Source: Oculina patagonica
Taxonomy: Eukaryota
Direction: 5' to 3'
DNA length: 64,000 bases
Assembly (NCBI RefSeq): GCF_052425735.1
Contig: NC_135766.1
Location: forward strand, 26,598,001-26,662,000
In this document: positions 3,401-12,400 of the stretch, one piece after another
Position numbering within the stretch: the stretch's first letter is position 1
Layout: each line of letters starts with the position of its first letter
The notes under the pieces: model-generated
Database searches by the model: none
Seen by the model: only the letters and a program-made list of their open reading frames with translations
Told to the model about the DNA's origin: nothing
Made by a program: the position numbers and the translations under genes

Positions 3401-6400
3401 ACCACATGGATTGCCCAAAAGTTTGACCCTGGCTTAATGATAGGATCACTTTTTTAACGCGATTCAACTGAAAGGAGACATACGTTACCTTTGGTAAGAC
3501 TGGAGTCATTTCCTCATCTGGTATTACCAAAGACCGTAGCATTGTGTTGATATTAATATCTGCAGCTTCATCTGAGGTGTCATACAACTCAACAGAAGCT
3601 GTATTCCCAGACCTGCAACAGCACAAATAGAAAATAGGTTCAACAAATAAGTAAGAAGTACACTCTAACATTTATTACAATATTATAGTCATTGTGCACA
3701 CGCCTACGATGGTCAAGCAGTTAGCATGCATACATCAGACTGGAGATCCTATGATAAATGGGTCAAGTCCTAAACTCTGCCCTCATGTTGTGTCATTTGG
3801 CAAGATGTTCCACTCTGCAGGGCTAATATCTTCACCCATATGTATAATGGTTCTGACAAACTGCTAGAAAAACTTGACAAAAATGCTGGGAAATTCTGCA
3901 TGATGGGCAAGCATCCCATTCAGGTGGAGTGGCCAGTAGCAAGAAGCCTAGGGGGGAGTAGGTGAATTATGCTGTGAACACCAGAGTTATGTGACAGCAG
4001 TCAAGAGCAAACTGTTCACAGCCTCTCTTTTTCAATGCAAAAGAAAATGTGTGAGAGAAAATAGTGAGCAAAGCAAGCATGTCACATGGGCGTACCATGG
4101 GGGGGGGGGGGATGGAAATGGGGAGTGAGCAAAGCGAGCTTGAAAGACAAATATATCTATAGGTATATTTCTCTTGCTCCTGCCCCTTTGTGCCTCCTAA
4201 TTTGTGCTAACCTGCGATCAGGCGTTATTTAAAAGAAAGCCTGATCGCAGGTTAAATTTGTGCTGGCATTCAGTTCTCTTGCTGTTCTTTCCCTGTGTTC
4301 AATATTTGAGGGCTGTGAACAGTCTAGCCATGATCCACTATATATACTTATGAAGACTTCGATCTACTATCACCGCACATGATTCAACACACATCTAAAT
4401 GTACTTGTTTCTTTGATGGAGTTACTAATGAGGGCTACCAACCTTTTTATGACTTCTGCCACAAGATCCTTGCCAAGTGTCATGTGTTTCAGCTTAAGAA
4501 CAACTTCTGCATTCTTTGTTTTGGGCAAACCGTTGAGACTGATAGTGCAAGCCTTAAACACAATCAGAAATCTATGATTTAATATTTAAGAAGATCGAAC
4601 TGGGTGAAAGGAAATCACAACGGCATCAAGAGAAAAGTCTATAACAATAAGTTATTAACAAATTGATCACCAAAGGGAAATTGTTTTGATCTTTTAACAA
4701 ATTCTCCCACATATACTATAAGAATATGTATGGAGATCATTCAGAAGAATTTGTATGTGGATATTGGGGCTTAATAGGTAAAAAAACCTCTCTGCTGTCA
4801 ATTTATGCAGTTTGTTCATATGTACATGTAGTTCTATTTTTGCATTGCTCAATGTGCCCGTGAAAGGAACTTCCGTTTGTGGAGTACAGTCAACTCTCGC
4901 CTTGCAGACATCCTGCTTTTGCGGACACTGGCTATTACGGACAAAATTTAGATCCCCAGAGAAAGAGGTTTGAATGGAAATGACTCCCGCTATTACGGAC
5001 TCTCGCTATAACAGACACTAATTGACGCCCCGAGCATGTCCGCTATAACAAGAGTTGACTGTATAGGAAATTTTGTAGTGCCTCTATGAAAGAACATGTA
5101 TCAACCATCTCAAAACGGTTAACCCAATCCTACAAATCTTACTTCAAGTAAAGGTGCTGACATTTTGTAAATCTTGCAGTTTTTGAACACATCTCAAAAA
5201 TTCGAATAAGACTAAATTTTGATAAACATTTGACAATAAAAATAAGCGGCAGTAAGACACAACGTTTCGATGTCATCCTGACATCATTTTCAAGTGACAA
5301 ATAAAATAACGGTTCAACAGTGTTATATATGCGGTTAGAGGTGTGATGTTTCATTAACATATTTGTTTTAAACAAATAGTTTCGCGCGGATAGAATCCGA
5401 TTGCGTGTTCAGGCTAGGTTTATTCTTTCTAATAAACAACTTTTCGTAAATCAAGCAGTCCAGTTTTCCGCTGCATTTCTTTAGGACGGAAAAATTACTG
5501 GTAAGGTCGCCGATGTTATTAAGGCCGTGGTCGTTCTTTAAATGCTTCCCGATTGCGGAGAACCTATGTTCATCAATACGTTGGTGTAAGTGCCGGCTGG
5601 TATAGCCGACATAATCTGCATCGCACAGATCACATTGGTAATTGTACACAACGCATTGTTGATTTATTAAAGGTGGTTTTGGTTCACGCATCTTGAGATC
5701 TTCACCGATTTTGCGACTCTTGAATACTGGTTGAAGAGTGTGATCGATTTTCTTGCTCAGGTCAGATAGTTGTTTTTTGACTCTGTCGGCCGACGTTTGA
5801 TCTTTAAAAGGTAATACCACTCGGTGAATGATATCCTTGTTGTTAGGTACTTCAGCTGGCACGAGAGGATCTTTGGTCATCACTGAGGTGACAAAGTGAG
5901 AAATGGTTGAGTTAATTAGGCTTGCAGGGTACTTGAGGTTCGTAAACATCAGCTTCAGGCGATCACATTCAGTCACGAAACACTCCCATGTAGATGACAG
6001 ATGAAAAGCACGGTTTACCATGGTTTTTATGAGCGACTTCTTGTACCTTTTGTCGACATGGCTTTGGTGATGGAGCAGCAGGCCGGTATTTGTTGGCTTC
6101 CGGTAAACACTGGTTTCCAGTTGGTGACCTTTCTTAAGTATTTCCATACCAACAAATGGTAACTTGTTGTCAGAAGCTAGCTCCATTGTGAATTGTATGG
6201 ATGGGTGACAGTTGTTAAGTGTTGATAAAAAGGCTTCTGCTGCTGGCACATCTTTCATCGTGGCAAGCGTGTCGTCGACATATCGCCTGTAAAACTCTGG
6301 GAGCTTGTTGTCATGTTCTAATTTCTCTTTGATGGAGCAGAGAAATGCATTCGCCATAAGGGGTCCCAAAGGTGAGCCCATTGCCACTCCGTCAGTCTGT

Positions 6401-9400: not shown

Positions 9401-12400
9401 GCGTTCATAGACAACTGGTTTAACGAAACCCACAAGATGAACATCACTCAGCCTGATCTGATTCAACTTCTTGAAGTAGCAACTAAGAACCAATTGTTCC
9501 AGTTCGATGGCAAGCTTTACGAACAGACTGACGGAGTGGCAATGGGCTCACCTTTGGGACCCCTTATGGCGAATGCATTTCTCTGCTCCATCGAAGAGAA
9601 ATTAGAACATGACAACAAGCTCCCAGAGTTTTACAGGCGATATGTCGACGACACGCTTGCCACGATGAAAGATGTGCCAGCAGCAGAAGCCTTTTTAACA
9701 ACACTTAACAACTGTCACCCATCCATACAATTCACAATGGAGCTAGCTTCTGACAACAAGTTACCATTTGTTGGTATGGAAATACTTAAGAAAGGTCACC
9801 AACTGGAAACCAGTGTTTACCGGAAACCAACAAATACCGGCCTGCTGCTCCATCACCAAAGCCATGTCGACAAAAGGTACAAGAAGTCGCTCATAAAAAC
9901 CATGGTAAACCGTGCTTTTCATCTGTCATCTACATGGGAGTGTTTCGTGACTGAATGTGATCGCCTGAAGCTGATGTTTACGAACCTCAAGTACCCTGCA
10001 AGCCTAATTAACTCAACCATTTCTCACTTTGTCACCTCAGTGATGACCAAAGATCCTCTCGTGCCAGCTGAAGTACCTAACAACAAGGATATCATTCACC
10101 GAGTGGTATTACCTTTTAAAGATCAAACGTCGGCCGACAGAGTCAAAAAACAACTATCTGACCTGAGCAAGAAAATCGATCACACTCTTCAACCAGTATT
10201 CAAGAGTCGCAAAATCGGTGAAGATCTCAAGATGCGTGAACCAAAACCACCTTTAATAAATCAACAATGCGTTGTGTACAATTACCAATGTGATCTGTGC
10301 GATGCAGATTATGTCGGCTATACCAGCCGGCACTTACACCAACGTATTGATGAACATAGGTTCTCCGCAATCGGGAAGCATTTAAAGAACGACCACGGCC
10401 TTAATAACATCGGCGACCTTACCAGTAATTTTTCCGTCCTAAAGAAATGCAGCGGAAAACTGGACTGCTTGATTTACGAAATGTTGTTTATTAGAAAGAA
10501 TAAACCTAGCCTGAACACGCAATCGGATTCTATCCGCGCGAAACTATTTGTTTAAAACAAATATGTTAATGAAACATCACACCTCTAACCGCATATATAA
10601 CACTGTTGAACCGTTATTTTATTTGTCACTTGAAAATGATGTCAGGATGACATCGAAACGTTGTGTCTTACTGCCGCTTATTTTTATTGTCAAATCTCAA
10701 AATTAATGCTAAAAATTGTAAAATTTGTCAATTTTGGAGCTGCATTCAATCCTGGGCATAAGTGGGGATAGTAGGGCTACAAAGGACATGACACTGCAGC
10801 ATGTCCCTGCTACATTTGTGTGTCTGTGTACAAGTGATTACATGCCCCCTCGTGAGCATCCATCTTGAACTGGCAAGGCAGACAGATCTTATGCCACAAA
10901 CCTGGAAAGGCAATTCCAGAAATCTTGGTGGAATACTCCTCAAGCTTGAGGTGGGAACCATTCCTGTGTCCCCGTAGTCCATGTACTCAATCTGAACTTT
11001 GTCTCCTTTGACTTTAAGAACCTTTACACGATACCACAGACCCTCTGAATGAATTTCCTTGGAATAAATGGCAAATATACTTCCAGGGATGATTTTTAGG
11101 GCCTCTAAATAAAACAAAAAAACATTAAGTTAGTATAACAAGTTAGGATTATTGGAATGAGAGCTTGTGACTCTGATAACTATGGGGAGACAATGGGACA
11201 GGTTCATCGCTACATACAGATCATTTATTTTCTATTATGCGACCTGCCAGACCTGGCATCAAACCAACTTGCCTCTCACCTTTCTTTCCGGTTTGTGTTT
11301 TTTTTTTACAAGTTCACGACTGATACTCAACAATTCCAAATTTCAATTTGTTCTGGCTTAAATGGAATATTTGTCACTTACTCATACCCATTGCAATGGC
11401 TGGCACAAAACACAGCATTGTGCCCATGTAAAGCGGCTAGGAATATTTCTACTACCCCCTGAATGGGATGCTAGTCCATCGCAGGGTACCCTTCCCAGCA
11501 TTATGTCGCCGGTACCCATTTATACACCTGGGTGGAGAGAGGCACTATGAGAGTAAAGTGTCTTGCCCAAGAACACAACACAGTGACCCCGGCCAGGGCT
11601 CGAACCCGGACTACTCGATCCGGAGTCCGGTGCACTAACCATTAGGCCACCGTGCCTTCCATTGTGCACATGTAGCAGACACAAATATGACACACACAAT
11701 GATTCTTTACCTTCAGAACTTGGTTCTTCATAATGGCACAGCATACTCTGTTCCAGAGCTGTTAGTTTCTCCTAAATAATGCGGGAAAAAAAAAACAGAT
11801 TAGTACAACTGTGAAAAGTAAAGCCCAGCCCAGATAAGAAAATGAATCACCAAGAGTTGAAGGATGAGAATAACACGAGTTTTCTTTAACTCTTATTAAG
11901 GGCTGGCAAACTGTCAATGACATTTACGCAAAAGGTTTACAATGAAAGCACTCAACAGTCGAGAACAGTCACTAAAAGTGCATGCATTTCTGGCCAAACA
12001 AGAGCTTGAGGGCTTGAATTCTTGTCAACTGATCATTCACATCCGCCCCAGGCTTAATACTGACTAAATTGTGGGTAGAGGTGGGGCTTCAATGTTCTCT
12101 ACTTCTTAACAGAGCTGGTATTACACAGAGAAAAGCATGGGAATTAAACTGTACACTGACACAAGTAGGGCATCATCTCAGCAAACAGACCAAACCAGTT
12201 ATTACTCCTGAAGTCTTTTTATTAATTACCAGAATACCTTAAATGTTTATACTAACTTACAGAATAATTTTCTCCAGAAAGATTGACACAGATGTTGTCA
12301 GTGCTGTGCACATTGCAAACAAACACGTCTAGATAATCCTCATCTGGGACTTGTACCCTCTCTAACAAGGAAACAAACAAAAGTTATCAGCATGTTTTTT

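Follow-up and report, generated by a model that had tools for sequence, protein, structure and literature searches.

Here, we analysed a 64,000-nt stretch of the genome of the coral Oculina patagonica (contig NC_135766.1, assembly GCF_052425735.1; hereafter the window), in which a unit of ~5.5 kb holds two complete copies of a Penelope-like element (PLE), joined head to head within an intron of a TDRD7-like gene. Our results favour a model, in our judgement very probably correct, where a single retrotransposition of a canonical PLE gave rise to the whole unit: a staggered cut was made, both target strands primed reverse transcription, and the two complementary DNAs (cDNAs) were joined head to head. 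The pair lies within a single target-site duplication (TSD), carries a short filler at its central junction, is missing from an empty allele, and consists of arms that were identical at insertion; the same layout recurs across the genome. An earlier sequence-only reading of this DNA singled out the locus, which is, however, not special: a head-to-head pair within one TSD, tailed on one side, is the structure already described as typical of PLEs (PMC3846280, PMC8557442). The layout is a locally usual and published mode of PLE insertion, and the pair is a clean example of it, not a new kind.

Architecture and Identity of the Element

A repeat finder delimits two inverted arms of 2541 nt each (5228-7768 and 8155-10695), whose 5' ends meet at the junction and whose 3' ends face outward. 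Direct repeats are found within both copies, 5197-5292 matching 7748-7843 on the left (96 nt, spacing 2551) and 7848-8147 matching 10375-10674 on the right (300 nt, spacing 2527); each copy is a partial tandem, made of a pseudo-long terminal repeat (pLTR) followed by one full unit of ~2.55 kb (table 1). The word ATCTCAAAA, previously put forward as a single TSD bracketing the ~5.5-kb unit, indeed stands on both sides (5191-5199 and 10694-10702); read against the empty allele described below, the left copy of the duplication is ATCTCAAAAATT and the right copy ATCTCAAAATT, 11-12 bp that are partly common to the element ends (microhomology). Neither arm is flanked by a TSD of its own, the only duplication being the one that brackets both. 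Base-by-base alignment of the arms gives 12 substitutions, nine of them nonsynonymous, and one 24-bp indel, which makes exact the earlier estimate of about a dozen substitutions, nine amino acid changes, and the same indel. The 24-bp segment is present in the left copy only (7769-7792 vs 8154). It makes up eight in-frame codons, for IVKCLSKF, where the open reading frame (ORF) is encoded by the tail/pLTR junction; its absence is private to the right arm, and no microhomology flanks it.

Table 1.— Coordinates in the window of the head-to-head unit, its reading frames, and the domain-coding stretches of the host gene
Feature	Position	Strand	Description
Left TSD	5191-5202	.	ATCTCAAAAATT; last 6 nt also readable as element end (microhomology)
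Left arm, full 2551-nt PLE unit	5197-7747	-	Repeat analysis, re-alignment
Left 3' tail, ~31 nt	5197-5227	-	Left arm only; right arm ends at the equivalent of 5228
Left ORF	5368-7827	-	819 aa; reverse transcriptase (RT) and C-terminal GIY-YIG
Left 5' pLTR, 96 nt	7748-7843	-	Repeat of 5197-5292
Junction filler, 11 nt	7844-7854	.	GAAAGAACGAC; repeats adjoining AAAGAACGAC of right pLTR
Right 5' pLTR, ~300 nt	7855-8147	+	Repeat of 10375-10674
Right ORF	8120-10555	+	811 aa from ATG; RT and GIY-YIG
Right arm, full 2527-nt unit, no tail	8148-10695	+	24 bp fewer at pLTR/unit junction
Right TSD	10694-10704	.	ATCTCAAAATT; one A fewer than left
Next detected Tudor-coding stretch downstream in gene	809-916	-	Domain search
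Tudor-domain exon	10902-11105	-	Ends ...LPFQ at 10902; donor GT 10901-10900
Tudor matches	16293-16517, 10896-11051, 809-916	-	Two more beyond window start
LOTUS/OST-HTH exon	25024-25224	-	Domain search, structure match

The two ORFs diverge from a point at ~7.85 kb, the right one extending upstream of its ATG to a TTG at 8021 (8021-10555, 844 aa). Their proteins are identical at 802 of 819 residues, with a single 8-aa gap. RVT_1 of Pfam is matched in both (36-37 bits, cut-off 29.6), and GIY-YIG reaches 24.5 bits in the left ORF against a cut-off of 22.6 and, slightly below that cut-off, 21.7 bits in the right one. The ORF, domain, and repeat analyses thus agree with the prior description of two RT and GIY-YIG frames diverging from 7844-7854. 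PF00078 is present in 1577 homologues, and the homologues are coral PLE-type proteins. The endonuclease carries the CCHH motif with both Cys between GIY and YIG (stretch VVYNYQCDLCDADYVGYTSRHLHQRIDEH in the alignment of the two ORF proteins) and, by inspection, is not preceded by a CX2-5CxxC linker, a feature likewise missing from Penelope/Poseidon endonucleases (PMC8557442); by inspection, these characters appear to fit the Penelope/Poseidon type. On the basis of RT, GIY-YIG, pLTRs, and insert layout, we assign the element to the canonical PLEs with a C-terminal endonuclease (EN+). The ATGs of both ORFs sit within the upstream 5' pLTR.

A hammerhead motif in the pLTR is typical, though not universal, in the Penelope/Poseidon and Neptune clades. 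Unlike a typical Penelope/Poseidon PLE, the coral pLTR yielded no canonical motif: an Rfam search at E<=1 gave no hammerhead ribozyme in 4500-11500 or in three relatives (L012-L014), and the core pattern CTGANGA...GAAA has no match inside the element. At the element ATG there is an overlapping 7-bp hairpin, with GAAAC after it and no CUGAUGA box. Matches to microRNA families in one of these relatives, L013, stay below the gathering score and result from the palindrome.

One Polymorphic and Young Insertion

Contigs of four public coral sequencing runs were compared with 5000-10900. In run X1, from another coral sample, position 5196 is followed immediately by 10699 on a contig of 513 nt, without inserted letters; six letters fit either side, and the 364 flanking bases contain one mismatch. 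This empty allele reads ...CATCTCAAAAATTAATG..., a single copy of the duplicated site. The filled right boundary, in turn, is crossed by a contig of run X3 (10668-10900). The single TSD copy of the empty allele shows that both element copies came together, in a single event, and the existence of that allele makes the insertion polymorphic. The sequence-only reading had proposed a single insertion and had suggested looking for an empty allele with one TSD copy in other individuals; X1 supplies that allele, and a single event further agrees with the lack of per-arm TSDs and with six private changes in each arm. All 12 arm differences are in fact private to one arm (six left and six right) when compared with every other family copy covering each site; the arms were, therefore, identical at insertion and have since diverged equally. 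A model with two source RNAs was ruled out, no arm difference being common to any other copy.

Three of the 12 changes fall at CpG. Those of the right arm are four G>A, one C>T, and one C>A, and those of the left arm are mixed, with only 12 changes on which to judge a signature of editing or of an APOBEC-like activity. The observed/expected ratio of CpG is still 1.03 in the arms, as opposed to 0.52 in the surrounding intron, which indicates that the insert is young. No empty-site haplotig was found in the same assembly, where searches with the flanks returned only the locus itself and an unrelated dispersed repeat at 4885-5065. This repeat of ~180 bp resembles a short interspersed element or a miniature inverted-repeat transposable element, lies 125 bp from the insertion site, and, at first look, gave more than 1600 candidate matches genome-wide, those that were scored showing ~90% identity.

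Recurrence of the Layout across the Genome

One element unit was searched against the 529-Mb genome, and the 84 matches were grouped into ~39 loci, belonging to this family or to a sister family 72% identical to it. A genome-wide survey of 5'-5' junctions had been proposed earlier; here, 18 of the ~39 loci are abutting -/+ (head-to-head) pairs, and there are no +/- (tail-to-tail) pairs. Sixteen loci were fetched and re-aligned to the left copy as reference. Both 3' ends are intact in 12 pairs, and in each of these the tail is found on exactly one arm, one arm ending at reference 2610-2624 and the other at 2635-2647; the tail lies on the left in six and on the right in six, and the chance of such a distribution under independent assortment would be 0.5^12. 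A single exact TSD of 9-14 bp brackets 11 of the 15 pairs inspected (e.g. AAAGGATAAATAT, ATCACTGGTTTTAG, GAATTAAAAATCA, GAACTTTAAGTT), and that of the L013 pair was confirmed. The 5' break points are mostly unequal between the two arms of a pair; in L003, L004, and L013 both arms break at the same element position (2520, 2042, and 461, respectively), with spacerless or overlapping junctions. The 5' region is kept in only five copies genome-wide, and the pair at 5191-10702 is the only one in the genome with both arms complete.

Another pair, at G000:C4:62979068-62980870 (L003, L017), has head-to-head arms made of a 128-nt pLTR and the initial part of the unit, ~845 nt of it in one arm and ~903 nt in the other. 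Its arms are thus both 3'-truncated, and the TSD GAACTTTAAGTT is nonetheless a perfect 12 bp. This suggests that reverse transcription began deep inside the ORF on both strands.

A Model of Insertion and Its Rivals

Under the model of a single retrotransposition, the GIY-YIG endonuclease would cut both strands of the target in a staggered manner, giving rise to a 9-12-bp duplication. Reverse transcription would then start from each target 3' end within the 3' part of a multi-unit (tandem) PLE RNA, with a short stretch of microhomology (left, AAAATT; right, AAT), and, with start points ~30 nt apart, only one arm would end up with a tail. The two cDNAs would run past the whole unit into the preceding one, accounting for pLTRs of 96 and 300 nt, and their ends would be joined with the short templated filler of 11 nt, bringing the 5' ends together and leaving the 3' ends outward. 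Two steps of the model are inferred: priming on both target strands, for which we draw on published in vitro work and on the outward orientation of the 3' ends, and end-joining at the central junction. Both-strand priming had already been put forward in the sequence-only reading; the outward 3' ends are as that proposal expects, and the priming itself draws on the in vitro work (PMC11167929).

Two other histories of the unit have to be considered. PLE endonucleases are able to target PLE pLTR sequence (PMC11167929), and the unit could on that account have arisen when one element inserted, independently and precisely, at the 5' end of an earlier one. We regard this as exceedingly improbable: no TSD surrounds either arm alone, the sole duplication bracketing both; the load of private mutations is equal, six and six; no half-filled allele has been seen; and the layout with a single TSD recurs at other loci. 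The second history is an artefact of assembly, in which a palindromic repeat would have been mis-assembled into a second full arm, the true allele being one full copy with a short inverted pLTR or having some other structure. The central junction is without independent support, and tandem and inverted PLE structures are known to be troublesome for assemblies (PMC8557442). Yet the arms are not mirror images, since they differ in pLTR length (96 vs 300 nt), in the 11-nt filler, the 24-bp indel, the one-sided tail, and six private substitutions each; the right boundary is present in X3, the X1 empty allele agrees with a TSD-bounded unit, and more than 14 other loci follow the same design with varied truncation points and TSDs of their own. 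An artefact is, thus, very unlikely.

Several observations nonetheless weigh against the single-retrotransposition model. No listed contig was shown to span the central junction (7844-7854), the contigs stopping near 7776, where the repeat begins; a run search with junction words (7815-7884) listed no run, although it sampled only two words and is not evidence of absence. Arm divergence is 0.48% here vs 0-0.23% in seven other pairs, making this pair either older or faster-mutating. The family, as judged from its sequence, is one without a canonical hammerhead motif in the pLTR. Finally, sequence alone cannot tell two-strand priming from snap-back of a cDNA, and three other pairs are exactly symmetric. 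At this locus, the asymmetric 5' ends and the filler argue against simple snap-back; snap-back or strand switching may also occur, as the three exactly symmetric pairs suggest, and the coexistence of symmetric and asymmetric pairs hints at two routes, snap-back and the joining of two cDNAs.

Comparison with Known Systems

In a typical Penelope insert, the ORF lies between two pLTRs and an adjoining inverted pLTR completes the structure, which has a TSD of 9 bp and, on one side, a tail of 31 bp (Arkhipova et al. 2013; PMC3846280); the first codons fall within the pLTR, and head-to-head is the commonest inverted form (PMC3846280). More generally, an EN+ PLE copy has beside it an inverted one that is truncated at its 5' end, and the insert shows one TSD and, on one side, a tail of 30-40 bp (PMC3846280; Craig et al. 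2021, PMC8557442). The coral pair shares with them the partial tandem pLTRs, the head-to-head partner, the single TSD of ~9-12 bp, the one-sided tail of ~31 nt, and the start of the ORF in the pLTR, and most copies of the family are likewise 5'-truncated. It differs in that the inverted partner is here untruncated: both arms exceed one unit and both ORFs are open. With regard to mechanism, a 2024 study found that the Poseidon protein of a lizard element is able in vitro to cleave both target strands, top and bottom, and to extend them, with reverse transcription beginning at an internal position of the RNA (PMC11167929). The two outward 3' ends with offset end points would fit such both-strand extension from internal RNA starts, although the Poseidon evidence is biochemistry on a lizard element and the coral family is known here from sequence alone.

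A further parallel is offered by LINE-1 twin priming, reportedly set out by Ostertag and Kazazian in 2001, in which the second target strand is said to prime, producing an inverted 5' segment inside one TSD. Twin priming of LINE-1 yields non-overlapping pieces of one RNA. Second-strand priming and inversion within a single TSD would be common to both systems; however, the coral arms overlap over 2541 nt, and an inversion of the LINE-1 type was rejected. As both arms hold a complete element, their origin calls for two templates, for a multi-unit RNA, or for the first cDNA to have been copied, unlike in LINE-1.

The novelty of the locus is minor, given that the architecture, two-strand extension, and small interfering RNAs (siRNAs) from inverted Penelope copies have all been published. 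What the locus adds is a new and unusually complete coral instance, whose main use is that of a reference case for PLE integration, not of a new system. With both arms complete, a known empty site, a young family, and ~15 sister pairs, it is a very clean natural example of PLE integration: models of two-strand priming and of snap-back must both explain the tail on one arm (12 of 12), the single 9-14-bp TSD in most pairs, and the occurrence of symmetric beside asymmetric 5' junctions.

Host Gene and the Predicted Hairpin RNA

The insert begins 199 nt into the intron downstream of the Tudor exon at 10902-11105. Compared with solved structures (PDB), the LOTUS exon has its best match in TDRD7 (3.7e-12), with TDRD5 at 1.5e-9; a TDRD7-like identity of the host gene seems justified at the level of domain architecture (LOTUS, then several Tudor), and the sequence-only reading had rightly put the insertion within an intron of such a gene. 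The insertion is polymorphic and the same layout is found wherever the family lands, so this gene context is best read as coincidence, which we consider the most likely explanation.

Host transcription, on the minus strand, would pass first through the right arm, in antisense orientation, and afterwards through the left arm in sense orientation, and it follows from the sequence that read-through would place a hairpin of ~2.6 kb in the pre-mRNA. Folding of 7560-8360 on the host-sense strand reproduces the stem, a 24-nt bulge, and the loop of ~260 nt previously predicted (z = -41). By analogy with inverted Penelope copies in Drosophila, such hairpin RNA may feed RNA interference. The notion of siRNA from inverted Penelope copies is not new: Evgen'ev's group found that, in transformed D. 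melanogaster, rearranged Penelope with long inverted repeats gives rise to siRNAs exactly on the inverted regions, and that these silence the element poorly (PMC3681739). In Adineta vaga, small-RNA polarity flips between the halves of inverted PLEs (PMC3846280). The coral pair resembles Drosophila hairpin RNA/endo-siRNA loci and the inverted Penelope copies (PMC3681739) in being a long inverted repeat of a transposon that could be transcribed by read-through into double-stranded RNA; it differs in being an intronic and segregating coral insertion, known from its sequence.

Could the hairpin then be a functional source of anti-PLE siRNA or Piwi-interacting RNA (piRNA) in cells expressing the TDRD7-like gene, favoured by selection? 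The near-perfect complementarity over 2541 bp on one transcript would speak for it, as would the siRNAs of D. melanogaster (PMC3681739) and the polarity switch of Adineta vaga (PMC3846280). Against it, the contigs of the RNA run X15 show 17 mismatches in 493 nt and derive from diverged copies, the architecture is the same at many loci whatever the host gene, the Drosophila siRNAs silence poorly (PMC3681739), and the gene context would be a post hoc coincidence among dozens of insertions; moreover, an empty allele exists, and an insertion that is not fixed counts against a conserved function. We hold this explanation to be very improbable, and no function of the pair is indicated. Still more conjectural, and in our view highly improbable, is an intronic hairpin "vaccine", transcribed with the TDRD7-like gene in germ cells to yield anti-PLE siRNA or piRNA, under which the somewhat greater age of the pair relative to others while still segregating would reflect selection keeping it. 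Locus-specific expression was rejected for the X15 RNA contigs, which are ~3.4% different and, thus, stem from other copies or another species.

Other Features in the Window

Five histone 3' stem-loops (RF00032) on both strands at 37771-50150 point to a histone gene cluster, and SNORD46 is found at 29060-29155. An almost perfect palindrome of ~160 bp at 45700-45860 has CTGATGATGATCGAACAGATCGAAA on both strands and contains hammerhead-like core words, with no Rfam match at the gathering score; it may be another foldback or a PLE-derived junction.

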